Shown here piece by piece: positions 12,001-63,290 of a stretch of DNA of 64,000 bases. Below the pieces are notes generated by a model, which was not told where the DNA came from, did not search any database, and saw only the letters and a program-made list of their open reading frames with translations. Origin of the DNA: Macrostomum hystrix (lineage: Eukaryota; Animalia; Platyhelminthes); NCBI GenBank assembly GCA_950097015.1, contig CATNEN010000039.1, positions 13,144,001 to 13,208,000 on the forward strand, written 5' to 3'. The stretch's first letter is position 1. Each line of letters begins with the position of its first letter. The translations under genes were made by a program, and so were the position numbers.

Positions 12001-15000
12001 TCATTTTCTGTCACTCTGCTCATTCTCTGTCACTCTGCTCATTCTCTGTCACTCTGCTCATTCTCTGTCACTTCTGCTCATTCACTGTCACTCTGCTCAT
12101 TCTCTGTCACTTCTGCTCATTCTCTGTCACTTCTGCTCATTCACTGTCACTCTGCTCATTCTCTGTCACTCTGCTCATTCTCTGTCACTCTGCCCATTCT
12201 CTGTCACTCTGCTCATTCTCTGTCACTCTGCTCATTCTCTGTCACTCTGCTCATTCTCTGTCACTTCTGCTCATTCTCTGTCACTCTGCTCATTTTCTGT
12301 CACTCTGCTCATTCTCTGTCACTCTGCTCATTCTCTGTCACTTCTGCTCATTCACTGTCACTCTGCTCATTCCCTGTCACTCTGCTCATTCTCTGTCACT
12401 CTGCTCATTCTCTGTCACTCTGCTCATTCTCTGTCACTCTGCTCATTCTCTGTCACTTCTGCTCATTCTCTGTCACTCTGCTCATTCTCTGTCACTTCTG
12501 CTCATTCACTGTCACTCTGCTCATTCTCTGTCACTCTGCTCATTCTCTGTCACTCTGCCCATTCTCTGTCACTCTGCTCATTCTCTGTCACTCTGCTCAT
12601 TCTCTGTCACTCTGCTCATTCTCTGTCACTCTGCTCATTCTCTGTCACTTCTGCTCATTCACTGTCACTCTGCTCATTCTCTGTCACTCTGCTCATTCTC
12701 TGTCACTCTGCCCATTCTCTGTCACTCTGCTCATTCTCTGTCACTTCTGCTCATTCTCTGTCACTCTGCCCATTCTCTGTCACTCTGCCCATTCTCTGTC
12801 ACTCTGCCCATTCTCTGTCACTCTGCTCATTCTCTGTCCCTTCTGCTCATTCTCTGTCACTTCTGCTCATTCTGTCACTCTGCTCATTCTCTGTCACTCT
12901 GCTCATTCTCTGTCCCTTCTGCTCATTCACTGTCACTCTGCCCATTCTCTGTCACTCTGCTCATTCTCTGTCACTCTGCTCATTCACTGTCACTCTGCTC
13001 ATTCTCTGTCACTTCTGCTCATTCACTGTCACTCTGCTCATTCTCTGTCACTCTGCTCATTCTCTGTCACTTCTGCTCATTCACTGTCACTCTGCTCATT
13101 CTCTGTCACTCTGCTCATTCTCTGTCACTCTGCTCATTCTCTGTCACTCTGCTCATTTTCTGTCACTCTGCTCATTCTCTGTCACTTCTGCTCATTCACT
13201 GTCACTCTGCTCATTCTCTGTCACTTCTGCTCATTCTCTGTCACTCTGCTCATTCTCTGTCACTTCTGCTCATTCACTGTCACTCTGCTCATTCTCTGTC
13301 ACTCTGCTCATTTTCTGTCACTCTGCTCATTCACTGTCACTCTGCTCATTTTCTGTCACTCTGCTCATTCTCTGTCACTCTGCTCATTCACTGTCACTCT
13401 GCTCATTCTCTGTCACTCTGCTCATTCTCTGTCACTCTGCTCATTCTCTGTCACTTCTGCTCATTCACTGTCACTCTGCTCATTCTCTGTCACTCTGCTC
13501 ATTCTCTGTCACTCTGCTCATTCTCTGTCCCTTCTGCTCATTCACTGTCACTCTGCCCATTCTCTGTCACTCTGCTCATTCTCTGTCACTCTGCCGATTC
13601 TCTGTCACTCTGCTCATTCTCTGTCACTTCTGCTCATTCTCTGTCACTCTGCCCATTCTCTGTCACTCTGCTCATTCTCTGTCACTCTGCTCATTCTCTG
13701 TCACTTCTGCTCATTCACTGTCACTCTGCTCATTCCCTGTCACTCTGCTCATTCTCTGTCACTTCTGCTCATTCTGTCACTCTGCTCATTCTCTGTCACT
13801 CTGCTCATTCTCTGTCACTTCTGCTCATTCTCTGTCACTCTGCTCATTCTCTGTCACTTCTGCTCATTCACTGTCACTCTGCTCATTCACTGTCACTCTG
13901 CTCATTCTCTGTCACTCTGCTCATTCTCTGTCACTCTGCTCATTCTCTGTCACTCTGCTCATTCTCTGTCACTTCTGCTCATTCACTGTCACTCTGCTCA
14001 TTCTCTGTCACTTCTGCTCATTCTCTGTCACTCTGCTCATTTTCTGTCACTCTGCTCATTCTCTGTCACTCTGCTCATTCTCTGTCACTCTGCTCATTCT
14101 CTGTCACTTCTGCTCATTCACTGTCACTCTGCTCATTCTCTGTCACTTCTGCTCATTCTCTGTCACTTCTGCTCATTCACTGTCACTCTGCTCATTCTCT
14201 GTCACTCTGCTCATTCTCTGTCACTCTGCCCATTCTCTGTCACTCTGCTCATTCTCTGTCACTCTGCTCATTCTCTGTCACTCTGCTCATTCTCTGTCAC
14301 TTCTGCTCATTCTCTGTCACTCTGCTCATTTTCTGTCACTCTGCTCATTCTCTGTCACTCTGCTCATTCTCTGTCACTTCTGCTCATTCACTGTCACTCT
14401 GCTCATTCCCTGTCACTCTGCTCATTCTCTGTCACTCTGCTCATTCTCTGTCACTCTGCTCATTCTCTGTCACTCTGCTCATTCTCTGTCACTTCTGCTC
14501 ATTCTCTGTCACTCTGCTCATTCTCTGTCACTTCTGCTCATTCACTGTCACTCTGCTCATTCTCTGTCACTCTGCTCATTCTCTGTCACTCTGCCCATTC
14601 TCTGTCACTCTGCTCATTCTCTGTCACTCTGCTCATTCTCTGTCACTCTGCTCATTCTCTGTCACTCTGCTCATTCTCTGTCACTTCTGCTCATTCACTG
14701 TCACTCTGCTCATTCTCTGTCACTCTGCTCATTCTCTGTCACTCTGCCCATTCTCTGTCACTCTGCTCATTCTCTGTCACTTCTGCTCATTCTCTGTCAC
14801 TCTGCCCATTCTCTGTCACTCTGCCCATTCTCTGTCACTCTGCCCATTCTCTGTCACTCTGCTCATTCTCTGTCCCTTCTGCTCATTCTCTGTCACTTCT
14901 GCTCATTCTGTCACTCTGCTCATTCTCTGTCACTCTGCTCATTCTCTGTCCCTTCTGCTCATTCACTGTCACTCTGCCCATTCTCTGTCACTCTGCTCAT

Positions 15001-16978
15001 TCTCTGTCACTCTGCTCATTCACTGTCACTCTGCTCATTCTCTGTCACTTCTGCTCATTCACTGTCACTCTGCTCATTCTCTGTCACTCTGCTCATTCTC
15101 TGTCACTTCTGCTCATTCACTGTCACTCTGCTCATTCTCTGTCACTCTGCTCATTCTCTGTCACTCTGCTCATTCTCTGTCACTCTGCTCATTTTCTGTC
15201 ACTCTGCTCATTCTCTGTCACTTCTGCTCATTCACTGTCACTCTGCTCATTCTCTGTCACTTCTGCTCATTCTCTGTCACTCTGCTCATTTTCTGTCACT
15301 CTGCTCATTCTCTGTCACTCTGCTCATTCTCTGTCACTCTGCTCATTCTCTGTCACTTCTGCTCATTCACTGTCACTCTGCTCATTCTCTGTCACTCTGC
15401 TCATTTTCTGTCACTCTGCTCATTCACTGTCACTCTGCTCATTTTCTGTCACTCTGCTCATTCTCTGTCACTCTGCTCATTCACTGTCACTCTGCTCATT
15501 CTCTGTCACTCTGCTCATTCTCTGTCACTCTGCTCATTCTCTGTCACTTCTGCTCATTCACTGTCACTCTGCTCATTCTCTGTCACTCTGCTCATTCTCT
15601 GTCACTCTGCTCATTCTCTGTCCCTTCTGCTCATTCACTGTCACTCTGCCCATTCTCTGTCACTCTGCTCATTCTCTGTCACTCTGCCGATTCTCTGTCA
15701 CTCTGCTCATTCTCTGTCACTTCTGCTCATTCTCTGTCACTCTGCCCATTCTCTGTCACTCTGCTCATTCTCTGTCACTCTGCTCATTCTCTGTCACTTC
15801 TGCTCATTCACTGTCACTCTGCTCATTCCCTGTCACTCTGCTCATTCTCTGTCACTCTGCTCATTCTCTGTCACTCTGCTCATTCTCTGTCACTCTGCTC
15901 ATTCTCTGTCACTTCTGCTCATTCACTGTCACTCTGCTCATTCTCTGTCACTCTGCTCATTCTCTGTCACTCTGCTCATTCTCTGTCACTCTGCTCATTC
16001 TCTGTCACTTCTGCTCATTCACTGTCACTCTGCTCATTCTCTGTCACTCTGCTCATTCTCTGTCACTTCTGCTCATTCACTGTCACTCTGCTCATTCCCT
16101 GTCACTCTGCTCATTCTCTGTCACTCTGCTCATTCTCTGTCACTCTGCTCATTCTCTGTCACTCTGCTCATTCTCTGTCACTTCTGCTCATTCACTGTCA
16201 CTCTGCTCATTTTCTGTCACTCTGCTCATTCTCTGTCACTCTGCCCATTCTCTGTCACTCTGCTCATTCTCTGTCACTTCTGCTCATTCTCTGTCACTCT
16301 GCCCATTCTCTGTCACTCTGCCCATTCTCTGTCACTCTGCTCATTCTCTGTCCCTTCTGCTCATTCTCTGTCACTTCTGCTCATTCTGTCACTCTGCTCA
16401 TTCTCTGTCACTCTGCTCATTCTCTGTCCCTTCTGCTCATTCACTGTCACTCTGCCCATTCTCTGTCACTCTGCTCATTCTCTGTCACTCTGCTCATTCT
16501 CTGTCACTCTGCTCATTCTCTGTCACTTCTGCTCATTCACTGTCACTCTGCTCATTCTCTGTCACTCTGCTCATTCTCTGTCACTTCTGCTCATTCACTG
16601 TCACTTCTGCTCATTCCCTGTCACTCTGCTCATTCTCTGTCACTCTGCTCATTCTCTGTCCCTTCTGCTCATTCACTGTCACTCTGCCCATTCTCTGTCA
16701 CTCTGCTCATTATCTGTCACTCTGCTCATTCTCTGTCACTCTGCTCATTCTCTGTCACTTCTGCTCATTCACTGTCACTCTGCTCATTCTCTGTCACTCT
16801 GCTCATTCTCTGTCACTTCTGCTCATTCACTGTCACTCTGCTCATTCCCTGTCACTCTGCTCATTCTCTGTCACTCTGCTCATTCTCTGTCACTCTGCTC
16901 ATTCTCTGTCACTCTGCTCATTTTCTGTCACTCTGCTCATTGTATGTCACTCTGCTCATTGTATGTCACTCCGTCACT
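1..16978. repeat. 19-bp satellite array (consensus CATTCTCTGTCACTCTGCT) with 17- and 20-bp variant units; runs off the left edge
   Basis: Continuous tandem units with recurring variants (CATTCACTG, CATTTTCTG, CACTTCTG, GCCCATT, TCCCTTCTG). The array decays at ~16940-16978. Confidence 0.99.
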
Positions 16979-17616
16979 CTCTGAAAATTGCAGGCCATGG
17001 TGTACTATACTGCTTTCATTGTCTTGAAACTAGCTAAGGCACATTATTTTATTAGTCAGTACAAAATTCAATCAAGCGATTGGTTGATTTTGACTGGAAA
17101 TTCGGAAATTGCCAAATTTCTTGGATTAGAAAGCTTATACAGAACTGATTTTGCCTTCACACCTCCTCCGCACGGTAGAATATCATCCGCTGTTTAAGTG
17201 AAAAAAAAACTGAAAATATCTTACTTGCATGTTAGATATAGAAAATACAGTGGAGAGAAAAATACTAATATGAACAGCTCACTGAAAATATTTAGGGCTG
17301 TACTGCAGAGAACAGGCCTATATCAAATAATATCTTCGGCAATATACCCCAGCTATTATAATGCGGATATCATCCCTCAATCCTTTTCAAATCCGTTCCT
17401 CACCCGGCAACACTGCCGCTCAAGGGAAAACGCACTTTTGTCTATACGATTCGCATGCATAATGGATGACATCCAGATGGATGGGCGCGCTGAACAGCCT
17501 GTGGCTGAGCATGAGCTAGTGCGTCTGCATTTTCACTGCTTACAGATTGCACATCCTTGCAGGGAAATATTTTTGTTATAATGGGATTTATAACCTGTCT
17601 TTCTGGGATTTAAAAT

Positions 17617-43868: not shown

Positions 43869-46800
43869 TCACAGAGCCTGGAACATTTTGCTCTTTTCTG
43901 AGAATGAGGACGGATTCATCTTGACTTGGGTGCGCCGATTATTCCCAATCTTTGCCCGGATCTCCTCCAAGCTGACATTGCCGACTGGGTCTTTGGCGGC
44001 TGCTGCTGTCGCTGCTGCTGATTTACCTGATGACGAACCGTTCATGCTGTTACTGACACCAGCTTGCTGCTCCTGCTGCTGCTGCTGCTGCTAATGAAGA
44101 TAAAAATGTAAATTATTGAACGAATGAATGAATGAATGCTCTGATTAATTAAATGTTCAAGTACACCTTTGGCTATCAAATGAAGCATTAAATACGAGGG
44201 CTATCCCAAAAGTAAGTTTCGGTCAACAATAAAAAGCGAACACTTTGAAGGAAAGTCTTAAAACTTTAACAGTAGTCAAAAACAGGTCATAGTTACTCCA
44301 CAAATTTGCCGCCAAGGTCCACGCACTTTTGCCAGCGCCGTACCCACGCTAGAAAGGCAGCATCGCAGCCGCCGGTTGCCAGATGCCGCAAAGCTGATGA
44401 AGCATTGTTGCTTATCTGCTCCACAGAGGCAAAATGTTGTCCACGGAGGCTCTCCTTCATTCTGGGAAATATATAGAAGTCCAAATCAGGTGAATAGCGT
44501 GGCTGTGCCAGGACCTCCCAGTTCCAGGACTCCAGGAGCTTCTCCACTCTTCTGGCGCGGTGCACAGGTGCGTTGTCGTGGTGAAAAATCACGCCTCTCT
44601 CCAGCAAACCAGGCCGCTTTTTCCTGATGGCTGGCCTCAATTTTTCTTGCAGTACCCATCGGTAATATTCTGCATTCACCTTGGTGCCGATTGGCACTGG
44701 CCAGTCCACCAGGACCCATGGATGTCAAAGAAGACTACGTGCATCACCTTCAAGGAGCTCTGCTTCCGTTGAACCTTCTCAGGACTCGCTGATTCCCTTG
44801 GAAGCCACTGTGCTGACTGGCGCTTGAGCTCAGGATCCCACTCGTAGACCCATGTCTCGTCTCCTGTCAGAGTTCTGCTGAGAAAGTTGCTTCCCTCTCG
44901 ATTAAACCGTCGAAGGTGCTCTTGCGCCAGGGTCACCCTCTCCTTCATTTGGTCCTCAGTCAGGAGATGAGGCACCCACTTTGCGAAGATCTTCTGCATG
45001 TTCAGCTGCTCAGTAAGAATGCGATGCACTGTGCTGTGAGGAATGTCCAGGAGGTCCTGATCGATCTCATTGCAAGTCAATCTGCTGTCCACAGTGACTG
45101 CAGCTCTGACACGCTCTGCATTTGCATCAGTGGCGGCTGTTCTTGGCCTTCCAGACCGCTCTTTGTCTTCCATCGACAGCCTGCCTCCTTGAACTTCACG
45201 GACCCATTTCCGAACCGTTTGAATTGATGGAGCTCTTCATGAATCTCTGATGTTGATTTGCCAGCCAAACTGAAAACTTGATGATGCTTCTGACGTCGTA
45301 TCGTGTGAACGAAGCCGAAGTGGCCATCTTCGCAAACGAAGCTGTGTTTTACTTGTGAGACTGCATTTGCTTTGAAACTTTTGGTGCCTTTTGCCATAGA
45401 CATATAGATTCAGGAATGACTAACCGCGTTTGCCAAAAATGCACTTAAGAAAATTTATAATGCAGCGAAACTTTTTTTTTGGGATAGCCCGGCCTCGTAT
45501 CTATGTTTTGTTATACTAGAGTCTAGCTTTTTTGAAAGCTAGTTCATTATAAACTTTCATGAGATCTAGATTAACCAAGTCTTGTTTAAAAATTAACAAT
45601 TACTTTGAAAGCCAGACTGACTTATACATAGGAGAAATTGTTCTGCCCAATTCATAGCCACATGTACACACACAATTGTGTATCCAAGCATTTCAACACT
45701 AGCAAAGCATTGCAAAGTCAATCAGGCGTATCAAACAGTGGAAAATTTATGCAGAATTAATTATAAACAATTCAGTCAACACAAGGTTTGGAAAATTGCA
45801 AAAATAAAGCCAATTTACTGGAAAAGTCCTTCACCAAAATAGACACAACTGTTGATATGTGAAGCCTATGTGTCATATTATTATTATTGTATGTTTTTAA
45901 TATATATATTTGTTATGAAACGCATAAGCCGCTAAGCACACACACACATTGCAACACTATTAAAGCAAAGGTTAAGCTTTGATTTAATTTGCTAAAGCTA
46001 AGCAACTGAATTGCTCAGTGAATTCGTGTGCGCATGTACAGTCAAACCACACCTTATGCATGAATAATGAATTAGGCTTGTTCAGCCAAGGGTCAATGAC
46101 TAACTGTACCATTTATTTTATTGCGCATTGTCGCGGCGTGGTCACTGCATAGGGAGTGAAATGAGATTCGCAAGGAACCCTCCCGCTCTGGAGCAAAATG
46201 TTTTCAGCTAGTTCAATTTGGGACATACGCCTTGTGAGTGTACAGAAAAAGGTATTCGCAATTATAAAACTCCTATTACTGCCCATGCATTCAAATCCAC
46301 TTACTGCTGGACAGTGCCTAAGAATGCTGGAAATTCGCTGATTGGCAAAGTTTAACTACCCAAAAATAGGAAAATAGTAGGCAACCTAAAATCTAGGAAC
46401 AAGAGACTTTCTAACAAAAACTAAAACTGTAGAGAGAGAGAGAGGCAACCTAAAACTGTAGAGAGAGAGAGAGGCAACCAAAAACTGTAGAGAGAGAGGC
46501 AACCTAAAATCTAGGAACAAGAGACTTTCTAACAAAAACTTAGAAAGGTAGAAGACAACCGAAAACTGGAGAGAGAGGGAAAGGCAACCTAAGACTGGAG
46601 AGAGAGAGAAAGGCAACCTAAGACTGGAGAGAGAGGGAAAGGCAACCTAAGACTGGAGAGAGAGGGAAAGGCAACCGAAAACTGGAGAGAGAGGGAAAGG
46701 CAACCTAAGACTGGAGAGAGAGAGGCAACCTAAAACTGTAGAGAGAGAGGCAACCTAAAACTGTAGAGAGAGAGGCAACCTAAAACTGTAGAGAGAGAGA

Positions 46801-48093: not shown

Positions 48094-49890
48094 CGAATGT
48101 AAAGAAACCACGCACACAGAGTAGGAATCTCTCTTAATTGCAAGTTGAATCTGTCGACCAATATTTCGGCCCTTTCTGGGCCTTCGTCAGGGTCCGTTTA
48201 TTTGAAGAGATAGATAGATGGATAGAAATTTAAATAGCTGATTTTCTAAGAACAGACGGGAATGCTTTTGTAATTCTGAGAGAAAAATCACGGAAATAGC
48301 TTATTCAGACAGGCAGGAAACATGAAACCAATGCGCGGCCAGACAAAACGTGACTTGATACCGAAAAAAAGATTTTTCAAATCGATTTCACGCTAGAATT
48401 TGAGACAGGACAGAACGGGCTTCAGAAAAGCCTAAATTGGTGCTTCCGTTATGCCGATAAGTTTTTTAGATAAAAAATAAGCATATATTAATAAAAATAA
48501 CTGCTGAATGTGCCAATTAAAGCAATTAAAGCAATGAAGCAAGATTGTGTTATAATTTAATATCGAAACTCGAAAATTACATATAAGTAGGTAAGCTTTT
48601 CAAAAACCACATAAGCTTGGTGCAGGGCAATACCTCAGACTCTGGTGGGATCAATTCCTGATCGACAGCATTAAAATCACTGCCCTCATTTTCAGGTGGG
48701 TCTTTGTTAGACAACTCGACAGCTGCTTCGTCTTCCACAGTCGGCGCTTCGTTTTGCTCCTGTTGCTAATGACATAATGATTTCATAGTGCGGGAAATTG
48801 TTTTCTTTTACGTAGTTTTTATGCTTTATACTTAAACGATAACGATTAAGGAAAAGTATAAAAACAAAAATATTGACAATTTTACAAAAAAAGCTTACTA
48901 CTGCTTCCTGATGAATCTCTTGCTCCTCTTCGATGGCGCCCACTGTCGTCGGCTGGGTGTGCGGAGTGTTGAATAAAACTACATCTGGCATGCTCGAACT
49001 GATGGCGATTTGATTCTCTTTGCAGTATTTGTAAGTCTCCATGTCGACAACTAGCATCGTGACAGACTGGGCCGTTTCTTTGACAATTTCGACCACTCTT
49101 TGGTGTGACAGATCCTCTGAAAAAATGTTTTTGTAATGTGGTTTACAACTGGTTACCACATTGTTACCAGTGGTAACAACTGGTTAACAAAAATATCATA
49201 ACTTCAACAATAAATTGGTTCTGAAACATGACGAAGTTGAATTGGAAATTCACATTAAAAGGAGACAATATTTCTTTTAGTGCTATTGTGAGTTTAAGAA
49301 AATTTAACACTCGAGTCTTTACACCAATCAACTCGCAGAAACACATTTTCATGATGCATTTTTAATACAGCAAAGAAGTAATCGTGTTTTATATAAAATT
49401 ATATTTTTTAGCTGTAATAAAAAATATTTCCTAAAAGTAAAATAACACAAGTTAAAAAAATAAGAAACTAAAATGTATCCTGATAAATGTTTCTCAGCAT
49501 TTTGGGAATTTCGTCAATCTTTATATTAAAGCTATTTTGTTAAAAAATGAAATATTACTATATTATATTAATTTTGACATTATTAGCATTATATTATGCA
49601 TTAATTAATGCAAAAGTAAAAAGCAACTGAAATAGTTTAGTACAATACTTAATAATTGGATTGCATTGATAATATGATGACAACCTACCAACGTTGATGC
49701 CATTGACTTCGACAAGATAGTCCTTCGCTTTTAGGCCACCGTGTTCAGCCGGGGAGCTGGGATCGACTTTCCCAATGTACTGCCCTGCCTTGCCCTTCTC
49801 AGCGTGAAGATTGAAACCATAGCCGACAAACGTTGTCCATTTCTTCAGGTGACAAAGACGAGGAGGAGACAAGAAACTTGGAAATGACAT
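43869..49890 (-). CDS. NHERF1: NHERF/EBP50-family single-PDZ scaffold (~257 aa); exons 49890-49689, 49116-48899, 48765-48634, 44090-43869
   Basis: PDZ domain [57 protein letters not shown]. The C-terminus [21 protein letters not shown] resembles the EBP50 ERM-binding tail. All junctions are GT-AG and in frame. Confidence 0.88.
44195..45497 (-). mobile_element. Full-length but defective mariner transposon in NHERF intron 3
   Basis: TA TSDs (44193-94, 45498-99). TIRs CGAGGGCTATCCCAAAAGTAAGTTTCG and its degenerate inverse. Transposase motifs WVPHLL, TGDETW, HDNAPVH and YSPDL are split over three frameshifted ORFs (45403-44293). Confidence 0.93.
46380..47430. repeat. Purine-rich ~26-32-bp minisatellite (GAGGCAACCTAAAACTGTAGAGAGAGA)
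   Basis: Tandem variable units. Confidence 0.93.
48005..48093. repeat. (GATA)n microsatellite
   Basis: Direct reading. Resumes at ~48207-48225 after an insertion. Confidence 0.97.
48156..48194 (-). ncRNA. Minimal type I hammerhead ribozyme motif (Penelope-like element type)
   Basis: Minus strand: GACC-CTGACGA-A-GGCCC-AGAAA-GGGCC-GAAA-TATT-GGTC. This gives stem I, the CUGANGA core, a 5-bp stem II, GAAA and a palindromic vestigial stem III (ATAT). Confidence 0.72.
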
Positions 49891-52243: not shown

Positions 52244-52467
52244 TTAGCCTTTGAACACGTCAGGCGCCGAGAACAGAATGGCACAGGTGGATACAACTGT
52301 GAAGCAGGAGAACATTATCAAGCAGAGCCGGTCAACGACTCTGGCTGCAAACTTCCATTCGCTGGAGATTTCACTGTCGGCAATGTCGTCAGAGATTTTC
52401 TTTGTTATGATGCGCAGCTCGTTGATAACAGCAGTCAGGTCGTTTCGAGTGCTGCACTGATGATGTA

Positions 52468-52501
<34 letters not shown>

Positions 52502-52834
52502 ACAACCATTTGACGGTGACGGCATACCAACGCCGATGTAGTTTTGAAAATAGTTCGGCGGTCCAGACGACAATCCGCCGCCGACGCCGCCGCGGATGTC
52601 ATCCTCCAGGTCGAGCACGTTCGCCAGCAGCGACTTCGAAGAGCGTTCTCGGAGTTCCAAGCCGCCACCGCTGATGCCGCCGCAGTAGCCGCCGCATTCG
52701 CGACTTCGCCTTCGGCGCACAGCGAAAGAGTCGGGCCTCGATGACGGATGCTGAAGTCCGGACGCCTCGCGAGTACTGGTTGGATTTCGCATGCAGAGCA
52801 CAGTGGCCAGGTAAGTGCAGATGAGCTTTTTAAC
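52244..52834 (-). CDS. nAChR last exon (intracellular loop with polyQ, TM4, stop)
   Basis: AAG|[56 protein letters not shown]. Confidence 0.92.
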
Positions 52835-55800
52835 CTTGATGGCGGAAGTTGCGTTGTTAATTAGAAATCTATGGGTGGTCTCAAGATATCTCAAGATAGA
52901 TAAAACAAAAATGAGGATGTGAGGCAGTCAAACTCAATTCTCAGCTTCTTAATTCTCTGGCTATGGGGGAACTGGACACGAACTGGCCACTAGGGCCACA
53001 ACCTGGGATTTAGTGGGTTGCAATTGGGGGATTTGGTGGGTTACAACTGGGGGATTTAGTGGGATGTCACTGGGGGATTTAGAGGCCTGCCATAAGGGGG
53101 ATTTAGAGGGCCGCTACAAGGAGGATTTGGAGGGTCATCACAAGGGGGATTTGGAGGGCCATCACAAGGGGGATTTGGAGGGCCATCACAAGGGGGATTT
53201 GGAGGGCCATCACAAGGGGGATTTGGAGGGCCATCACAAGGGGGATTTGGAGGGCCATCACAAGGGGGATTTGGAGGGCCATCACAAGGGGGATTTGGAG
53301 GGCCATCACAAGGGGGATTTAGAGGGCCGCTACAAGGAGGATTTGGAGGGCCATCACAAGGGGGATTTAGAGGGCCGCCACAAGGGGGATTTAGAGGGCC
53401 GCCACAAGGGGGATTTGGAGGGCCATCACAAGGGGATTTGGAGGGCCATCACAAGGGGGATTTAGAGGGCCGCCACAAGGGGGATTTGGAGGGCCAAAAG
53501 GGGGATTTAGAGGGCCGCCACAAGGTGGATTTGGAGGGCCAAAAGGGGGATTTAGAGGGCCGCCACAAGGGGGATTTGCGAGTGTCGGCCAGTCGCCACG
53601 GTGGATTCAGTTGGTCGCCATCTGAGATATCCCGGTATTAGGGATATGAGGACCATGGGGTATTGTTTTTACTAGTTTATTAATACTAATTTGTTACTGT
53701 CTAACTAACTGTTCAGGTGGAGATAACAAATTTGATTCTTTACATAAAAATTTCGCAATCAACAAACCCTGACTGACTGACCCAGTTTGGCACTGGATGC
53801 GATTCAGCGTCTCTGTGGTGATAGTTGAGCACGATCACGGTGAATACAACCGATAGGCTACACATGATCATTGTGCAGGCAAAGTACATGCCTGCGTGGA
53901 TTGCAAGGTTAAAAGCGCTTTGTTATAAATTGTTATTCATTTTGGATATTTTAGGAACCAACACGAACCCTGGTAAAGTACACCCGAGCATGATAAAAGT
54001 GAAGTAATGTTTGCACCCCACATGGCATTGATGAAAAATGGTGAATATGTGTTCTAGCTCTTAGCCTAGATTTGTTTAAGGGGCCACTTTACTTGCAGCA
54101 GTTGGCTAAAATAGATTTCAAGCATGAAGTATGTGGCACAGGAATGAGAAGAAACCCGTTTTGGTGGGAGAAATCGTTCCGAAATGCATGTCGACAACTT
54201 TTTTTCTGTGCCTGTGTAAATTTGTGATGGACAGTCGAGGGTTTAGCATTGCTCATTTAGCCACCAGGTGTTCTCAAATTCACGAGAAAGCTTATCAGGC
54301 AAGTCATACTTGATGACTAGTAATTTTCTTCAACACCGTGAAAATAAACGACTAATATATAACCTTTCTTACGATACGCAAAACAAAAAACATTGAACAA
54401 GCAAATAAAAAAGGAAGGAACTACTACGAGTACATCTCTAGAAATTAAGCACCGAAACCCTGTTCGGGTCCGTCACTGGGGGGATTTGAGGGCCGCCAAT
54501 AAGGATTTGAGCGCCGACACCAGGGTATAGAGGCCCGCCACTGGGGATTTGGAGGGCCACTGGGGATTTGGAGGGCCACTACTGGGGATTTGGAGGGCCA
54601 CTGGGATGTGGAGGGCCACTGGGGATTTGGAGGGCCACTACTGGGGATTTGGAGGGCCACTGGGATTTGGAGGGCCACTGGGATTTGGAGGGCCACTGGG
54701 GATTTGGAGGGCCACTACTGGGGATTTGGAGGGCCACTGGGATTTGGAGGGCCACTGGGGATTTGGAGGGCCACTACTGGGGATTTGGAGGGCCACTACT
54801 GGGGATTTGGAGGGCCACTGGGATTTGGAGGGCCACTGGGGATTTGGAGGGCCACTACTGGGGATTTGGAGGGCCACTACTGGGGATTTGGAGGGCCACT
54901 GGGATTTGGAGGGCCACTGGGGATTTGGAGGGCCACTACTGGGGATTTGGAGGGCCACTGGGATTTGGAGGGCCACTGGGGATTTGGAGGGCCACTAGGA
55001 ATTTGGAGCGCCACTAGGGATTTGGGCCAAGTTTGCCAAAATTGGAGATTCAGAGGCCGCCACTGGGGGATTGGAGGGCCACATGCGAATATTTTGGTGG
55101 CTTGCCCCTTCACTACCACAAATCTCTTTGACTAATTGACTAGACTAAAAGACAAAACTAGGACGAAAGTCCCCAGCCAATCCTCACCAATGACCGGCAC
55201 AGCGTCCGAGGTTGGCGGCATGGCCTCGGCCACCATCATAAGAAACACGGTTAGCGACAGCAGTATTGTGACTCCTTCGGTGCGTTCACGAAACAGAAGA
55301 CACAAAATCGATTTTAGAAAGGGTGAATTGGGGAGGGGCGCAGGTTAACTTAAATTTTAAATCGGTGCTTTTTGAGGCAGTAAATTAAATAAATGATTAC
55401 AAAAAACAAGTGCATGGTTGGTTATGATCCCGAAACGACGGCTCGCACAAAAAATGTTTTTTGTTTCTAGAAAACATTAAATTTTTCTATATTAAGATCA
55501 TAATCTTGTGTTTCTTTATAGTAAATCAATGCGTTTACTACGAAATTTTAACCAAAATTAGTTTTAAACAAAATTTAAACAGCTTTTCAATACGGAAGTA
55601 AATCGAACTCAAGTTATTATTATTTATTTTGTTGCGAGAAAAATGAGTCACTAAACCAAAAATAATGAAAATTGTTCGGAAAGAGAAAACAGACTAGACT
55701 ACATTACACCCGTCACGGCTCAGGCAGTTAGGAATTGATGGACACACTGCGCAGGTGCTGAAGGGTCTCACCAATGAGCGGGACTGCTTCGGACGTCTGA

Positions 55801-58800
55801 GGCATTGCGTCGGCCACCAACAGTTGAAACATGGTCAGCGACAGCATGATTGTCACGCCTATAGCCAATGCGAGGTACGCGTTTTTTAACCATTTCGTTT
55901 TTTTACCATGCTGAAGATGCTTCTTGTAGAAACATATTTTCAATAGAAAAATTACGAGGTAGATAGATGAACATGCAGTGCATTCAACAACTAGATTAAC
56001 AATCAAAGTGCTTAACTCTGGTGCCGAAGATAGTTAGGTTAAAATCAACGGCTGGACAATATGTATCGAAAAAGCTAAGCTAGTCGAATCCTCGCAATCA
56101 TATTCGGGCTGCTGAATATGAAGCTTTAAGAATATGAGAGATAAGACACGGGAGAGATGAGACAGAGGAGAGATGAGACAGAGGAGAGATGAGACAGGGG
56201 AGAGATGAGACAATGGGGAGAGATGAGACACGGGAGAGATGAGACAGAGGAGAGATGAGACACGGGAGAGATGAGACAAGGGAGAGATGAGACAAGGGAG
56301 AGATGAGACAAGGGAGAGATGAGACAGAGGAGGAGAGATGAGACAAGTGGGAGAGATGAGACAAGGGGGAGAGATGAGACAGACAAGAGACGAGACAGTC
56401 AAGAGACGAGACAGTCAAGAGATGAGACAAGGGAGAGATGAGACAGAGGAGGAGAGATGAGACAAGTGGGAGAGATGAGACAAGGGGGAGAGATGAGACA
56501 GACAAGAGACGAGACAGTCAAGAGACGAGACAGTCAAGAGATGAGACAAGGGAGAGATGAGACAGAGGAGGAGAGATGAGACAAGTGGGAGAGATGAGAC
56601 AAGTGGGAGAGATGAGACAGAGGAGGAGAGATGAGACAATGGGGAGAGATGAGACACGGGAGAGATGAGACAGAGGAGAGATGAGACACGGGAGAGATGA
56701 GACAAGGGAGAGATGAGACAAGGGAGAGATGAGACAAGGGAGAGATGAGACAAGTGGGAGAGATGAGACAAGGGGGAGAGATGAGACAGACAAGAGACGA
56801 GACAGTCAAGAGACGAGACAGTCAAGAGATGAGACAAGGGAGAGATGAGACAGAGGAGGAGAGATGAGACAAGTGGGAGAGATGAGACAAGTGGGAGAGA
56901 TGAGACAGAGGAGGAGAGATGAGACAAGTGGGAGAGATGAGACAAGTGGGAGAGATGAGACAGAGGAGGAGAGATGAGACAAGTGGGAGAGATGAGACAA
57001 AGGGGAGAGATGAGACAGACAAGAGACGAGACAGCCAAGAGATGCGACAGTCAAGATATGAGACAGGCGAGTTGGAAGGGACCAGTGTCAGAGGTTGCCG
57101 AACCCAGTTTTAGGTGATGGATGAGTGATGGATTATCAGAGAATATTTTGAAGTGGATGGTGCACGCACCCAGTGAGATTTTCTCTCCAGCATCCGGCGG
57201 TAGGATGAAGGTGAGCAGCGCCATAGACGAGATGAGCACACAGGGGATGATGAGGTTAAATCCATAATAGAGTGTCCGCCTACGAATGCGAATCTGGTAG
57301 CGCAGATCAATGAACGGGTGCGGACAGCAGTCGTAGATGATGGCGGACCGTTCGCAAGGCATGCCTGCAACAATTGTTTTGTTTTTCTATCGAGGCCTTT
57401 CAAATAATTAACGATTTCTACATTTTAATTATTGATTTCTTTATCTATTAAAGTTATCGCCAGTTTAACGAATTTGGAGTTAAATAATTATTAAAGCTAG
57501 TGTTTCATTAAGCTTTGGATTTCCTATTGATAGGTCTGACAGATCGTTGAATATCTTGACGATGCGGATATTCTGGATTTCCATGGCGATTGGTTGAGCA
57601 GCTTAGGAGATTCAGAGAAAACTGAAACTTTTGGGGTGAGTACAACTGATGTAAGGTGAGATTTAAATCTTGGTTTCGAGAATGATATTTGCCAAATAAT
57701 TTTTTAAGCATTAAAAACAGCATGCTAGCTAGACCATGCATGAACTAGATGTGACAAATAGTACAATGAACAGTGATTGTAAGTGCTCATCAAGCAGATA
57801 CCAGCAAAATCATGCAAATTTCCAGCATGCCAAAATAGACAAGGTTGCACTAGGGTGGTGATTCTAATAGGTTATTTTAGTGTTGCAAAGTAATAAATAA
57901 TAACCAACACCTAGTAGGTACATGGTGCTTTAGAGCAGTGACGAAAGTACACGCATTACAGATTGTGATAAATTAGCAAACAATGATTTCCTATATTCAT
58001 TAAAACATTTTATAACCATGCGCGCATTCGTTTCGGGATCATTTCCACCAAGACTTCTTTAAACAAAGACTTCTTTTAACGAAGAATTTCAGCAACTAAT
58101 TCGGCCCGGCCTTACCAAAGCTGACCTTCTCGCCAGCGTCTGGTGGGATTATGAAGCTGAGAAGTGCCAGGCAAGCCAAGAATGAACAGGGGGCTATCAA
58201 ATTGAAAATGTAATACAATTTTCTGCGCCGGATGCGCAGAAAGAATTCTAGGTCAATGAATGGGTAGGGACAGCAGTCGTACAGGTTGCTGTGACGGATG
58301 CCCGGCACCTCTGGAACATTGTTGTCGACGCGAATGAGGCAATTAGGTGAAACTTTTTGTTACAAAATACGAGTAACTTTGGAGTTTATCTGCATTTTTG
58401 AAGACAACTAAACTAAGGGGATGGAGTGTCGGAATTTAAGGTTGGTGGTTCGATTTCCGTCTACACCGGATAATAATACCATTAATTTTAGGAGGGTTGC
58501 GGGCAATGACGCAGCATTTAGTGACACTAGACCCGCAGCCAGCGAGGAGGCAAAACTGACTGCTGAGCACACACACACACAGATACCGTACGCAGGCATA
58601 CGCTAACACAGGTGTGTACATCTGGCCTGACTTTCTCATCGTCAGGAAGTTTACACTCTCACTGTGTCTTGGAGGTTGGCCCTCAAGGGGTGTAAATCGC
58701 ATGACAAGCTCCCAAGCCTTCTCTCTGCGGCTGCGCCCGAAATAAATGTGGCCTCACCGCGGAATCGAGCTCTGGGATCTTTGTGCGAGAGACAAACGCG

Positions 58801-61800
58801 TTAACCGCTCTGCCACTGACCCCCCTGTCTCCACTGGAACAATTTGTGTCCGCTAGCAAAACACACTTAACTCTGCATTGCTTCAGTTCACCCAGCTGTT
58901 AAATGGCTATCATCTTCAGCTGGGGTAATTGAGGGCGGGTGTGGCGTTCCCACAGTCCATGGACTGAACAGTCGTACGCAGCCTTCAGATGTAATCAATT
59001 CTAATCACTGATAAGACAGAAAGAAAACAGCGTTTCATTTCCCCGAAATTTCTAGAGCCGAGGATAGTAAAGGAGATTAGAAATATCGGTTTTGATAAAA
59101 ATACAAATTTTCAATTAACTGAAACACAAATTAACCCTGTTCCATTTTTTGTTAGTCCATTCAACAACAAGACGATGTTTAGTTTTAGATGTTTTAGAAA
59201 TGGACAGGAAAATTTGTTCAAACGTAAACCTGAAATTTCACTGCCCAAACAAGCTCAAACACGACTCTTTCACTACTCAGCTTCTAAAATCTGATTAATA
59301 ATTCAAATCTGATCGACCAAGTTGTTCCATGTCAAGATTCGATCCGACGGACTTCGAGAAAAACGGTTCGCAGGATTAGCCAACAGGTACGTCAGTTCAT
59401 CGATCAACAGTGCATGCCTGCTGCTCAGCCAAAAATGATTGATTGATTATGGAACAGATGTGACAGCAACACGTTGGGTTTCGATGACGAAAGCAGCTTT
59501 AAATAAAAAATTTTTTCAGAAAACGTCGACAATCAGATTGACATGTCAGAGTGTTAGACTGATCGAATAGATTAATCGAAGTTGGGATGTTGTAAACTGC
59601 CAACAAGCTGTCTAATTATTTATCTTAGTCCAATAAAAAAACGGCACGCGATATTTCAACCTGACCATAATGGAAGTCAACATGGACTGCAGACTTCGAT
59701 TTTACGAGTGTACTATTAAACGGATCATTGCACTGGGATATTCAGACACGGCACACCTGTAGAACACACCTTGTACAGTTCATTATTTGGAATGAAAGTA
59801 TGAAAGTAAAGTTTCAGATAGACTATTCGAGTTTTTATTGCACTGTGGCCCGGTTGCAAATTAAACTTTTATTACTGGGTCGGATGTTTCATGATGATTT
59901 ATAATAATGTATGTAATAATGATGCTGTATGATATTCCCGTCCGTGAAGTTTCATGAAACTTTCATAAAAAACTGTCAGTACTTCTTTATGAACATAGAA
60001 ACCAAAAGGTGTTTTACAGAATAAATGATAAAAAGACTAGAATCAAACCTTCCAGACTCCACTCTCCGCTCGGTACATAATTTGAGATGTCACCCTCGCC
60101 ATTCACTGAGCAGTTCAACGGATCATTGAGCCGCAGCTCAGTAGTGCTAAGGCTCTCATTGCTGCACTTGAACCTCAGATCAACCGTGCCACCATCGTAG
60201 GTCCAGGAGCCGAATTTCAGTTTGCAAACCTGCGTGTCGAATGGAAACCAGGTGATGTCGATTTTGCAGGTAGAGCGGAACATGCCGGGCGGTACAAACG
60301 ACATGGAGCCGGTGTGGTCGATCACAACGTTCGTTGGATACGTGGCGTCGAATTTCTCATCCGCACTGTGGTTTAAAACAAATATTTAGAGACGAGAACT
60401 TCCACTGATTGAGATCTGTTCATGCACGTGAAATTCTAGACTTTTTTATCAGAAGCGTTAATGCGACTTCGCTGTCAAGCTTCGGATAACACATCTAGCT
60501 CGTACAATGCCAAGTTTAGGCACATCCGACATTGCTGCTGATTTTAAGTTCCACATAATGTAATTCGCTATGTTACATATTATATTATAATTGCTGGAGG
60601 GCTGCGTGAAATGACATCATTTGGGGACACTAGACCAGCAGCCAGAAAGGAGACAAGTCTGCCCATTTTGCTGACTGCTGAGCGCACACGCGTACAGATA
60701 CGGTTCGCAGGCATACGTTCACACAGGTGTGTACATCTGGCCTGACTTTCTCATCGTCAGGCAGTGTACACTCTCACTGTGCCTTGGAGGTTGGCCCTCA
60801 AGGGTGTAAATTGCACGACAAGCCCCCAAGCCTTCTCTCCGCGGCTGCGCCCGAAATAAATGGGGCCTCGCCGCGGAATCGAGCTCTGGGACCTTGGTGC
60901 GAGAGGCAAACGCGTTAACCGCTCTGCCACCGCTAATTAGCAAGGTTTATCACAACTTGCCTGTTATACAGAAGAATGTCGGGCTTCCATACACGCTTGG
61001 GATCAACGTTGATCTTCTTGACGCCGCCATACTCTTCCGGATTCCACACGAAGTGGTAATCCGTCCAGCTCTGAAATTAATTTATTATAGTATTTTAAAG
61101 CCTTAAGGCCGGTAGTTGTAGCGTGCCTTCTGCTTCGATAAAATCTTTAAAACCCTTCAAGGTTGTGAATATAAAAAATTACAAGTTGATAAAGAGACCT
61201 TGCAAAGACTACATTTAAATTTAATATTGTAAAATGATTACAACGAGATTTAAGCGAACCATTTAGTACGACTAGGAATTTGCAAGTAGCTCGAAATTTA
61301 GCTTTAGCAAAAACTGCAGCGTTCTAAGATTGGACAAACTATATAGAACTTTTCTTTAAGAAAATTCCTTGGTGTTAAAACGGTTAACGCGTTTGCCTCT
61401 CGCACCACGGTCCCTAAGTTCGATTCCACGGCGAGGCCACATTTATTTGGGGCGCAGCCGCGGAGAGAAGGCTTGGGGGCTTGTCGTGCAATTTACGCCC
61501 TTGAGGGCCAACCTCCGAGGCACAGTGAGAGTGTACACTGCCTGACGATGAGAAAGTCAGGCCAGATGTACACACCTGTGTCAGCGTGTGCCTACGTACG
61601 GTATCTGAGTGCGTGTGTGCTCAGGAGCCAGCGAAATGGGCAGAACTGCCTCCTCGCTGGCTGCGGGTCTGGTGTCACCAAATGATGGGTGACATTTGAA
61701 TTGTAAAAACTGAGTAAATTTTACTGTAAAGTAAACTGTAAAGGCGTATTGGAAAACAAAATGCAACATTATAGTGTTTGTTGTGGCAGTTGCCTACTCG

Positions 61801-63290
61801 CTAAAGGGTTTCACATAGAAATACATTTTTGCGCGAAAAAACTCTTCTGATGGAAGCGGTGGGGTGCAGGGTAAAACTCGGATTTTTACGAAAAACAACA
61901 TTAAGAAGACGAAACCATTCATAAAGTATACTTTTAGCGACAGTCACTTCATTATTTATCATTACTTACTAAATTTTAATAATAAAAATGGTAACTTTAG
62001 TAAGCGCAGAACAGAAGTGGATAAATATTCATTGCATAGTGATTGCAGCAAACTCACCAGATCCAACCAGATGTTAGCAAACAGTATCTGGTTTTTCTCA
62101 TCCTACATTATTTGGATAAAGGACAAGGATGCAAGGTTTGGATTAGCATGCTGTAGTAAGGTTAGAATATATGGTTTTAGTAAATTCAGCAGCAACAGAC
62201 ACTTGACAACCGACAGAATGGGGGAAAATGGTAGGTTAAACGCCTAAAATTCTGTTCCTAAGCAGCCGAGAAACAAACTATAATATTGGTTTTGATTCAG
62301 TTCTGTAGTTTTGTGAATCGAATATTAACTCTGAGGCAAACATGACAGGTTAGCAATGCAGTGGCTTTAGATAAAACAAATATAGACTGAAGTTCTGTGT
62401 GTCCAATATACTTTTAATAGGTGTCGTGCAGGTAAAATGCGAGCCAAATATAGCCATAATGGGTTGCTAAATATTGTTTTGTCCCAAAGGGAAGAACGAC
62501 CTGAATGATTTCTGCCTCGCTCCCAATAGTACAGAAGGGAGTTAAGAAAGGGATCAATATGACGATTTCGATGTTTTTTTTTATTGTAAAAGCAACATCA
62601 TGCTATTGTTTTATCATGATGCAAATCCGAATATAGCAAATGGGATTCTAAGCATCAGATAGAGCAGGGGTCGGCAAACTCCGGCCCGCGGGCCAGATGC
62701 GGCCCTCGAAGCTCCCAAATCCGGCCCGTTGCCCCTTCTGACATCTACAGTGTCCTGTTTCATCTCTCTCGTATCTAATCTCTCCCGTGTCTCATCTCTC
62801 CCGTGTCTAATCTCTCCCGTGTCTAATCTCTCCCGTGTCTCATCTCTCCCGTGTCTCATCTCTCCCGCGTCTCATCTCTCCCGTGTCTCATCTCTCCCGT
62901 ATCTAATCTCTCCCGTATCTTATCTCTCCCGTGTCATATCTCTCCCGTGTCTCTTCTCTCCTGTGTCTCATCTATCCCCTATCTCATATTTATACATTCA
63001 ATGCGGCCCGCTGTCGTCTTTTAGGCTCTCTCTTTGGCCCGCCAGCAAATAAGTTTGCCTACCCCTGAGATAGAGAATTTGGTGGCTAATTTATCTATGC
63101 AAGGCTTGGATCACTCAAAGGAACGCACCAAACAGACTCAGATTTAGTGACCAAACGAAAAATGGTGATCAAGACTAGTGGACTTGCACAATTCTATTAT
63201 AGAGCAAAAAAGCAATTTATGACGAACGAATTGACCACAACGCACTGTGTCCAGCCACATGTTGGTGTAAATTATCTGCAATCTTTCGTC
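52244..63290 (-). CDS. CHRNA7: Nicotinic acetylcholine receptor alpha subunit, alpha7-like, 5'-partial (exons 1-2 lie beyond the window)
   Basis: [12 protein letters not shown] (loop A), Cys loop [22 protein letters not shown] (loop B), YDCC (loop C), GEK ring, TM1-TM4, [14 protein letters not shown]. Exon sizes 45/110/195/87/110 match the conserved alpha7-group layout. The symbol is family-level only. Confidence 0.93.
52995..53580. repeat. 27-bp G-rich minisatellite (GGGGGATTTGGAGGGCCATCACAA-type)
   Basis: Tandem units in nAChR intron 9. Confidence 0.95.
53782..53891 (-). CDS. nAChR exon 9 (TM3: [30 protein letters not shown])
   Basis: 110 bp, CAG| acceptor and |GTCAGT donor. Confidence 0.92.
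54475..55082. repeat. 19-26-bp G-rich minisatellite (GGGGATTTGGAGGGCCACT)
   Basis: Tandem units in nAChR intron 8. Same core as the 53-kb array. Confidence 0.95.
55188..55274 (-). CDS. nAChR alternative exon 8b (TM2: [29 protein letters not shown])
   Basis: 87 bp, AAG| acceptor and |GTGAGG donor, phase 1-1. Confidence 0.9.
55772..55858 (-). CDS. nAChR alternative exon 8a (TM2: [29 protein letters not shown])
   Basis: 87 bp, TAG| acceptor and |GTGAGA donor, phase 1-1. Confidence 0.9.
56134..57068. repeat. ~16-19-bp purine-rich minisatellite (GAGATGAGACACGGGA-type)
   Basis: Tandem units between exons 7b and 8a. Explains the SHL/CLISP ORFs. Confidence 0.95.
57170..57364 (-). CDS. nAChR alternative exon 7b (loop C + TM1: [27 protein letters not shown])
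   Basis: 195 bp, CAG| acceptor and |GTGCGT donor, phase 1-1, open. Confidence 0.92.
58116..58310 (-). CDS. nAChR alternative exon 7a (loop C + TM1: [27 protein letters not shown])
   Basis: 195 bp, CAG| acceptor and |GTAAGG donor, phase 1-1, open. Confidence 0.9.
58505..58825 (-). mobile_element. SINE family A copy
   Basis: Reverse complement of the tRNA-headed element at 61381 and 38030. Confidence 0.85.
58855..58992 (+). mobile_element. SINE family B body (head missing)
   Basis: CACTTAACTCTGCATTGCTTCAGTTCACCCAGCTGTTAAATGG..CAGTCCATGGACTGAACAG..CAGCCTTCAGATG, inverse of the 23053 copy. Confidence 0.8.
60049..60365 (-). CDS. nAChR Cys-loop exon
   Basis: 317 bp, CAG| acceptor and |GTTTGA donor. 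[36 protein letters not shown]. Confidence 0.93.
60612..60930 (-). mobile_element. SINE family A copy
   Basis: High identity to the 58505 copy. tRNA-like head at the right end. Confidence 0.85.
60961..61070 (-). CDS. nAChR exon 4 ([37 protein letters not shown]), GC donor
   Basis: 110 bp. Ends AG|GCAAGT and joins 60365 in frame to give YNSADEKF. Confidence 0.9.
61381..61686 (+). mobile_element. SINE family A copy, inverted relative to the 60612 copy
   Basis: CGGTTAACGCGTTTGCCTCTCGCACC..AAGTTCGATTCC (B box) plus the family body. Confidence 0.85.
62058..62102 (-). CDS. nAChR alternative exon 3b ([15 protein letters not shown])
   Basis: 45 bp, TAG| acceptor and |GTGAGT donor, phase 0-0. Confidence 0.9.
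62665..63067. mobile_element. hAT (Charlie-like) MITE with an internal 16-bp minisatellite
   Basis: TIRs CAGGGGTCGGCAAAC / GTTTGCCTACCCCTG. 8-bp TSD AGATAGAG at 62657-62664 and 63068-63075. Subterminal GCGGCCC motifs. Confidence 0.9.
63246..63290 (-). CDS. nAChR alternative exon 3a ([15 protein letters not shown])
   Basis: 45 bp, AAG| acceptor and |GTGCGT donor, phase 0-0, loop D Trp. Confidence 0.85.

Follow-up and report, generated by a model that had tools for sequence, protein, structure and literature searches.

Three duplicated exon pairs in an alpha7-type nicotinic receptor gene of the flatworm Macrostomum hystrix and the probable antiquity of its exon 7 cassette

Does a single nicotinic acetylcholine receptor (nAChR) gene of a flatworm hold three pairs of alternative exons, and if so, how old are the pairs and how is one copy of each chosen? 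The question is raised by a 64,000-nucleotide stretch of Macrostomum hystrix DNA (GenBank assembly GCA_950097015.1, contig CATNEN010000039.1, positions 13,144,001 to 13,208,000; hereafter the window), in which exons 3, 7 and 8 of such a gene are each present twice. The evidence presented below makes it likely that these are alternative exon pairs in an alpha7-type gene, with one copy of each pair in a given mRNA. The gene represents, in a flatworm, the known alternative-exon design of alpha6/alpha7 genes, to which it adds an exon 7 cassette covering the first membrane-spanning segment (M1).

The exon boundaries were set by the reading frame and the splice signals, and searches were run exon by exon or with database proteins; C denotes contigs of the M. 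hystrix genome, L further DNA contigs and P database proteins. All of the exons in the window lie on the minus strand. Exons 3a (63246-63290) and 3b (62058-62102) are 45 nucleotides (nt) long, in phase 0, and encode loop D and the beta2 strand; 3a is the divergent copy and 3b the canonical one. Exons 7a (58116-58310, the derived a-type) and 7b (57170-57364, the canonical b-type) are 195 nt long and encode loop C with the vicinal cysteines, M1 and the M2 residues -1' to 4'. Exons 8a (55772-55858) and 8b (55188-55274, the canonical type) are 87 nt long and encode M2 from 5' onwards with the start of the M2-M3 linker. The six exons are open in the frame that their neighbouring exons impose, and have AG acceptors; the donors are GTGCGT (3a), GTGAGT (3b) and, for exons 7 and 8, GTAAGG, GTGCGT, GTGAGA and GTGAGG. 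The copies are separated by 1143 nt (3a-3b), 751 nt (7a-7b) and 497 nt (8a-8b).

The remaining exons are single, with one tblastn match each within the window. They comprise exon 4 (60961-61070, 110 nt), a fused exon 5/6 that carries the Cys-loop (60049-60365, 317 nt), exon 9 with M3 (53782-53891, 110 nt) and exon 10 with the cytoplasmic loop, M4 and a stop at 52244 (52244-52834, the acceptor position being a putative one). Exon 2 lies beyond the window (L039:1478-1626). The intron after exon 4 begins with GC (60955-60960; AG|GCAAGT) and is a GC-AG intron. The cytoplasmic loop of exon 10 contains approximately 12 consecutive glutamine codons (52400-52440), and two long minisatellite arrays occupy the intron between exons 8b and 9 (53000-55100).

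The two members of each pair are well separated in sequence. Identity in nucleotides and in amino acids is 60% and 53% for exon 3, 60% and 61% for exon 7, and 76% and 68% for exon 8, and the proportion of synonymous differences (pS) is near saturation in exon 3 (0.90), exon 7 (0.76) and exon 8 (0.47). The proportion of nonsynonymous differences (pN) between 3a and 3b is 0.29. In tblastn, 7a matches 7b with an E-value of 1.5e-25 and 8a matches 8b with 2e-9, both far beyond chance; the match of 3a to 3b is modest (1e-3), for an exon of 15 residues. An earlier note on this DNA had reported the pair lengths, phases, splice sites and open frames, the three spacer lengths, a strong synonymous divergence and single copies of all other exons. 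The exon features were confirmed to the base, the spacers were exact on re-measurement, and the divergence and the single exons were recovered as described.

The same note had called the gene an nAChR, and its sequence places it more narrowly, as an alpha7-type alpha subunit (alpha7, insect alpha5-7 or ACR-16-like). Exon 5/6 matches the Pfam domain Neur_chan_LBD (PF02931, E-value of 1.6e-23), while Neur_chan_memb (PF02932) is found on 7b and on exon 10 (exon 10 residues 112-186, E-value of 2.8e-10); exon 7a, searched as a 64-residue piece, scores slightly below the curated cut-off for PF02932. The closest solved relatives are human alpha7 chains, with E-values of approximately 4e-26, as against 4e-18 or weaker for other subunits. 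The named relatives in the protein searches were all alpha7-like, alpha6 or acr-16-like. The two cysteines of the Cys-loop in exon 5/6 stand 13 residues apart, and the vicinal cysteines (Y-D-C-C-P), the hallmark of an alpha subunit, are present in both 7a and 7b. The human CHRNA7 gene has exons of 45, 110, (80+168), 195, 87 and 110 nt, sizes matched by the Macrostomum exons. In this best solved relative the exons are all single, unlike the three pairs in Macrostomum, and in the Macrostomum gene exons 5 and 6 are fused, with an insert.

Five paralogues are present in the genome, counting this gene (C39). The gene on C24 has the full complement of 3a, 3b, 7a, 7b, 8a and 8b, as does C39. The gene on C11 has 3b only, with both copies of exons 7 and 8; that on C37 has 3b only, 7b with a decayed 7a, and both copies of exon 8; and that on C7 has only 3b, 7b and 8a. 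The C7 paralogue (L035) is compact, with introns of 92-619 nt in the examined part. Since the same a-then-b layout recurs on C11, C24 and C37 and in other species, the copies are neither haplotype nor assembly artefacts, a possibility that had been raised earlier. Across the paralogues the copies cluster by type, a with a and b with b.

Among paralogues, pN for 7a, 7b, 8a and 8b is 0.02-0.17, compared with a pS of 0.45-0.89, and the ratio of nonsynonymous to synonymous substitution rates (dN/dS) is at most 0.15 where dS is measurable. Exon 7b is present in all five paralogues (dN/dS 0.06-0.15), as is exon 8a (0.02-0.11), and the 3b peptide is near-identical in all five (pN 0-0.05). Because pN is low relative to pS, both copies of exons 7 and 8 are under purifying selection, and the earlier suggestion that the duplicates are maintained holds for these two exons. 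Exon 3a is the weakest case of the six. The 7a copy of C37 (L033, approximately 8087-8270) is interrupted by an in-frame stop and lacks the cysteine pair, while its M. lignano counterpart, P0154, has an intact 7a; one alternative exon has thus been lost recently and in this lineage specifically, which shows the fate of an unused copy.

Losses of this kind, in C37 and also in C7 with neither 7a nor 8b, would be expected if one exon of each pair were a relic, a dead duplicate still open by chance beside a spliced partner. The weak conservation of 3a, missing in three of the five paralogues, points the same way, and in roughly one case in two a frame of 45 nt would be open by chance. The dN/dS of 7a, 7b, 8a and 8b across saturated synonymous distances argues otherwise. 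Exon 7a is 94% identical to that of M. lignano, exceeding the constitutive exons 4 (78%) and 5/6 (90%), an a-type exon 7 is retained in three phyla, and the 3a peptide of C24 recurs unchanged in an M. lignano model. Gene models from that species also combine 7a with 8b in one gene and 7b with 8a in another, as detailed below. On this evidence, relic copies are quite unlikely.

The use of the copies was assessed in the only two runs found to contain the locus, both from one study and of unrecorded kind; contigs were placed on 55100-61099, and the joints listed were mostly repeat joints. The size of the contig sets (approximately 50 Mb, compared with a genome of 220 Mb), together with the 8b junction, suggests that both runs are RNA. 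In both, a contig running from the 8a-8b spacer through 8b stops at 55187 (the donor plus one ambiguous base), and these contigs carry 237 and 388 further letters, which fits exon 9 (110 nt) and part of exon 10. Exon 8b is thus spliced to the downstream exons, and this single junction is all that the RNA offers on the exclusivity and the up to eight isoforms proposed in the earlier note.

The protein databases provided a second line of evidence. The M. lignano orthologue models P0159/P0476 read 7a followed by 8b, without 7b or 8a, and match this gene at 94 of 105 residues in exon 5/6, 60 of 64 in 7a, 28 of 28 in 8b and 36 of 36 in exon 9. The NCBI M. lignano model P0157, of the C24 orthologue, has the opposite content, 7b followed by 8a, without 7a or 8b. 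A query with exon 5/6 against transcript-derived short protein fragments returned a single fragment from M. lignano, and none of the Macrostomum pieces spanned a junction.

Several observations weigh against the reading that these are alternative pairs with one copy of each per mRNA. The kind of both runs is unrecorded, their RNA status being deduced as above. A contig over the spacer and 8a ends at 55857, a single base short of the exon boundary, and carries another 24 letters; this is at odds with a clean junction and is ambiguous. The contigs over 7a and 7b extend into both flanking introns, and no joint of exon 6 to 7a or 7b, of either exon 7 to either exon 8, or of exon 2 through either exon 3 to exon 4 was present among the joints listed for 55100-61099. 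The M. lignano models are of unverified origin, either transcript-based or ab initio. The models P0001, P0154 and P0155, and models of Capitella, Owenia and insects, contain both copies in tandem. Exon 3a was found in C39 and C24 only, and the pN of 0.31 between these two is similar to the divergence of 3a from 3b.

Tandem arrangements are widespread in the databases. Exon 7 units in pairs, and as many as four exon 8 units, were observed in tandem in P0001, P0154, P0155, P0163, P0171, P0160-P0178, P0005 and P0006, which are alpha7-like receptors in UniProt/NCBI from M. lignano, Capitella, Owenia, crustaceans and hemimetabolous insects. Further M. lignano models read both copies, sometimes with pieces of intron between them. 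The tandem-copy models are probably prediction artefacts: the products would have extra membrane helices, and they are probably annotation errors arising from unrecognised alternative exons.

Read literally, such models would suit a leakier use of the pairs, in which a sizeable share of transcripts, above all for exon 3, has both copies or neither and, with lengths that are multiples of three, escapes nonsense-mediated decay (NMD). In Bombyx, alpha6 yields transcripts with 3a, with 3b, with 3a+3b and with no exon 3 (PMC2045683, PMC1919356), and several RefSeq and insect models omit exon 3. In the contigs described above the 8a-8b spacer is joined both to 8a and to 8b, which one molecule could explain. 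A doubled exon 7 or 8 would nevertheless add a membrane helix and should wreck the topology; the isoforms of the nemertean Lineus are equal in length, and the clean M. lignano models hold single copies. Leaky use on this scale is rather unlikely. The analysis thus establishes the anatomy of the pairs, the selection on both copies of exons 7 and 8, and the homology of 7a with a-type exons in annelids and a nemertean; the mutual exclusivity in this gene and the functional consequences we infer.

The effect of each choice on the subunit was predicted from the sequence differences, with M2 numbering that we take from alpha7 receptors in general, the conserved lysine being set at 0'. Exon 3 choice would alter the beta2 strand and loop D; the loop D tryptophan is kept in both 3a and 3b, and its surroundings differ. 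Exon 7 ends at M2 4', and 7a and 7b differ at 1' (V/I), at 3' (F/L) and all along M1, so exon 7 choice would act mainly on the pre-M1/M1 region and on M2 1' and 3'. The a/b contrasts that are conserved across phyla affect pre-M1/M1 and the M2 residues at its beginning (1', 3'). In this gene 7a and 7b have one and the same loop C core, Y-D-C-C-P-x-P-F-I-D-L, and because both Macrostomum copies have P-F-I-D-L, compared with Y-I-D-I-T in other spiralians, the two copies have changed together in the ligand-binding loop; it is the membrane part that carries the a/b contrast.

Between exons 8a and 8b, the first part of the M2-M3 linker and the M2 positions 8', 13', 15', 16', 17' and 20' differ, and these differences include the pore-facing positions 13', 16' and 17' and the outer ring at 20'. 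Exon 8 choice would thereby alter M2 and the beginning of the linker. Taken together, the choices may tune the subunit in gating and permeation, and the ligand site to a lesser degree. The proposal of three separately swappable modules, namely the complementary face, the principal face and the pore, holds as to their number; the second module is M1 and the inner mouth of the pore rather than the principal face, given that 7a and 7b do not differ in the loop C core.

To what extent is the exon 7 pair found elsewhere? Exon 7a was used as a query against 1.8 billion protein representatives, and the exon 7 tree was built from 73 units and 64 columns. The top matches were proteins with two matched stretches, that is, gene models with tandem exon 7 units. 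Outside the insects these came from M. lignano, Capitella, Owenia, a barnacle, an isopod, a lobster and a prawn; among the insects they came from stick insects, termites, a katydid, a locust, a planthopper, a kissing bug and an aphid. The first unit of the annelid models bears the marks of 7a: a lysine follows the arginine triplet, the glycine ahead of F-N-L is replaced by a hydrophobic residue, and the end reads ..E-K-V/L-T/S-F/C, as opposed to ..E-K-I-S-L. Their second unit differs little from the flatworm 7b.

The nemertean Lineus longissimus is represented by five RefSeq isoforms (numbered X1-X6), all of 480 residues, which differ by a swapped exon 3, a swapped exon 4 and a b-type or a-type exon 7. 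The a-type has the same ending as Macrostomum 7a. Lineus, Capitella and Owenia hold a/b exon 7 copies with the signatures of the Macrostomum pair (R-R-R-K-L-Y in the a-type, ..E-K-I-S-L in the b-type). Lineus and Capitella resemble Macrostomum further in having alternative or tandem copies of exon 3 (two units in tandem in Capitella); the swapped exon 4 of Lineus is unlike Macrostomum. Two isoforms of Tubulanus differ in exon 3.

The a-type precedes the b-type in Macrostomum, Capitella, Owenia, P0002, L075, L076 and L082. In the metagenome host contigs L075 and L082, exons 4 and 5/6 are followed by the a-type and then the b-type of exon 7, a single exon 8, and exons 9 and 10; L082 has two exon 3 candidates. 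The 7a-7b spacer in these two is approximately 80-90 nt, compared with 751 nt in Macrostomum, and a second exon 8 was not seen in them or in the Lineus and annelid models, in contrast to Macrostomum. Across L075:6674-7141, L082:9733-10192 and L076:532-1024 (annelid-like), the exon 7 copies lie approximately 80-110 nt apart, a gap short enough for possible steric exclusion, unlike that of Macrostomum. Other contigs have an a-only exon 7 (L050, L051, L053, L055, L057) or a b-only exon 7 (L042, L043, L054, L058, L062, L068); these apparently derive from one kind of worm, in which the cassette seems to have been replaced by two genes.

In the 73-unit tree, a branch with a support of 98/85 (94/93 on the M1 half) separates the 19 a-type units, without exception, from the rest. 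The flatworm 7b units and the trematode exon 7 form a clade (99/98) inside the canonical group. Because the branch is supported and both the end motif and the order, a before b, are shared, we consider, with fair confidence, that 7a had a single origin before the divergence of flatworms, annelids and nemerteans. Counting against this, a duplication inside the flatworms was not rejected by the approximately unbiased (AU) test on the full 64 columns (p=0.315 and 0.26); on the M1 half it was rejected marginally (p=0.041), with a partition chosen after seeing the data.

Tandem exon 7 pairs are also present in the alpha7-like gene of the Pancrustacea (barnacles, decapods, an isopod, termites, locusts, stick insects and a planthopper), together with up to four exon 8 units, and crustacean RefSeq isoforms with the second exon 7 type alone exist. 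There the derived copy is the downstream one, and the arthropod exon 7 units, second copies included, group together (91/98), apart from the spiralian a-type. Owing to this position and this grouping, the pancrustacean pair appears to be independent of the spiralian pair.

The papers searched contain no report of an alternative exon 7 (loop C/M1) in alpha7-type genes or of nAChR splicing in Macrostomum, and none describes the cassettes of Lineus, Capitella or Owenia, which are known from database annotations. A pair named exon 7 in Bombyx alpha8 is a different exon, covering TM2-TM3, and was set aside. The exon 7 (M1) cassette is present in public annotations of several phyla, and is probably new to the literature and ancient in Spiralia.

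The ages of the other two pairs were approached through the insect alpha6 gene, in which exons 3 and 8 are 45 and 87 nt long. This gene (Dalpha6) belongs to the same alpha7-like subfamily and has the same two exons duplicated (3a/3b and 8a/8b/8c), with lengths that are multiples of three and NMD not policing the choice, as in Macrostomum. Exon 8 has three copies in insects and two in Macrostomum, and no exon 7 pair has been described for insect alpha6, unlike Macrostomum. One insect exon 8 variant reads A-D-A-x-P-Q-T-S-E-A, as does Macrostomum 8a. The alternative exons of insect alpha6 have been conserved for a long time (PMC1919356, PMC6393475).

For exon 8, a tree from 28 columns groups the flatworm 8a with the exon 8 of trematodes (81/83), so that the 8a type is at least as old as the Macrostomum-trematode split. 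The 8a type is the only exon 8 type in trematode proteins. The flatworm 8a groups further with those insect variants that read ..A-D-A-L-P-Q-T-S-E-A.. and with the 8c-like forms (88/84); a flatworm-only origin of 8a was not rejected by the AU test (p=0.10, on the 28 columns). The contigs L075 and L082 and the Lineus isoforms each have a single exon 8. The trematode proteins show the same combination, 7b-type with 8a-type, as paralogue C7. Exon 3a resembles neither insect exon 3 variant, and its 15 residues are too short for ancestry to be traced; its core, Q-I-I-Y-T-N-M-W, recurs in one animal gene, L066, which combines this 3a-like exon 3 with an a-type exon 7 and with T-S-E-A in exon 8. A rule by which subunits would be either a-a-a or b-b-b was rejected, as L049-like contigs pair an a-type exon 7 with a b-type exon 8, and M. 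lignano pairs 7a with 8b.

The earlier note had seen in the exon 3/8 pattern either deep ancestry or convergence. The comparison adds an exon 7 pair that Macrostomum shares with annelids and a nemertean; for exons 3 and 8 either alternative may hold. A wider reading, which we offer tentatively and regard as somewhat doubtful, is that several cassettes were already present in the alpha7-type gene of the ancestral spiralian, or perhaps of the ancestral protostome, that the exon 7 a/b pair has been kept as a pick-one cassette in flatworms, nemerteans and annelids for more than half a billion years, and that the A-D-x-x-P-Q-T-S-E variant of exon 8 in flatworms and hemimetabolous insects derives from the same ancestral second pore exon.

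How might one copy of each pair be chosen? Steric hindrance is excluded by the spacers of 497-1143 nt, and policing by NMD by exon lengths of 45, 195 and 87 nt, all multiples of three, with which no frame shift arises; on both points the previous assessment was correct. U2/U12 incompatibility is excluded as well, the six donors being ordinary GT donors of which none resembles the U12 donor consensus. The further claim that an active mechanism is needed goes beyond these exclusions, given the insect transcripts with both or neither of 3a and 3b (PMC2045683, PMC1919356).

Dscam1, 14-3-3zeta and ATE1, in which RNA structures compete, share with this gene the arrangement of equal-length tandem exons of which one must be chosen. 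A choice of the Dscam type would have an intronic docking site pair with one of two selectors, and the spacers here are long enough to hold such elements. The introns of the five paralogues were compared at matching positions, and only short interspersed nuclear elements (SINEs) were common to them. The energies of inter-intron duplexes lay within those of dinucleotide shuffles (z of -1.3 to +1.6), and the longest helices exceeded the shuffle maximum only twice, by 2-3 score units, both being A/U-rich. No docking or selector element was thus detected in the Macrostomum gene, in contrast to the three model genes, and the conservation, duplex and helix tests, which were confined to introns of this genome and therefore had weak power, gave no signal. 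We regard a Dscam-type choice as improbable.

The introns also contain inverted repeats. A SINE-like repeat of 317 nt lies in the intron between exons 4 and 5 (60615-60931), an inverted copy, 89-90% complementary to it, lies between 3b and 4 (61371-61687), and a third copy lies between 6 and 7a (58515-58807). The first two are inverted arms that flank exon 4 in the pre-mRNA. ARAGORN found no tRNA gene in these repeats, and the same SINE is present in introns of the paralogues on C11 and C7. The third copy could compete for pairing, and a layout of this kind can favour exon skipping or back-splicing. A minisatellite with a unit of approximately 13-16 nt (G-A-G-A-G-A-T-G-A-G-A-C-A-like) occupies 56130-57085 in the intron between 7b and 8a, with an inverted copy in the 3a-3b spacer (62751-62989) and a direct copy upstream of 3a, beyond the window (L039, approximately 1018-1429). 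The contig depth of the minisatellite, from thousands to hundred-thousands, is that of a high-copy repeat.

Duplexes between these minisatellite and SINE copies could in principle decide whether 3a is looped out, as arms of 230-250 nt with 76-84% complementarity bracket it. The same elements are found elsewhere in the genome, at very high contig depth, and C24 has a 3a/3b pair without such inverted repeats. The larger, competing copy between 7b and 8a is a point of note for such looping; pairing with it would, conversely, loop out five essential exons. Repeat-driven looping is very unlikely, and the SINE and minisatellite inverted repeats are probably incidental.

The analysis favours, by elimination and as a guess, a regulated competition between weak acceptors under cell-type-specific splicing factors, because steric, U2/U12 and NMD explanations are excluded and RNA pairing was not found. 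Several acceptors of the duplicated exons have poor pyrimidine tracts. Two-exon cassettes of nematodes, such as that of unc-32, provide a model for a regulated choice (PMC3585155). Strict exclusivity should not be assumed, insect exon 3 being sometimes doubled or skipped.

Other parts of the window were noted in passing. The first 16-17 kb (1-17000) are of uniform composition, with a GC skew of -0.55 and an AT skew of -0.57, and presumably form a long satellite array. On the minus strand at 44293-45173, adjoining frames of 138 and 165 amino acids with the motif H-H-D-N-A-P-V-H have a mariner/Tc1-like look and are probably a broken transposase. Frames at 48577-49890 (minus strand) resemble, by their look, PDZ-domain exons of a neighbouring gene, with the motif G-Y-G-F-N-L-H.

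Insect alpha6, the target of spinosad, is the textbook receptor diversified by pick-one exons, and the Macrostomum locus presents a design of the alpha6 type outside the arthropods. The exon 7 cassette, which covers loop C and M1, has gone unremarked in the public models, whether from flatworms, annelids, a nemertean, crustaceans or many insects, and many database proteins can be flagged as probably wrong in holding both copies in tandem. With steric, U12 and NMD explanations excluded, the gene is well suited to the question of how exclusivity is maintained in two-exon cassettes. If the ancestral gene was indeed a multi-cassette one, few mutually exclusive exon systems of neurotransmitter receptors would have been maintained for as long, its conserved core would be an unstudied M1 variant, and in some lineages the cassette would have given way to two genes, one a-only and one b-only. 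If the M1 exon of a-type is that old, it would mark a conserved functional split, in gating, assembly or sensitivity to lipids and modulators, in alpha7-type channels.

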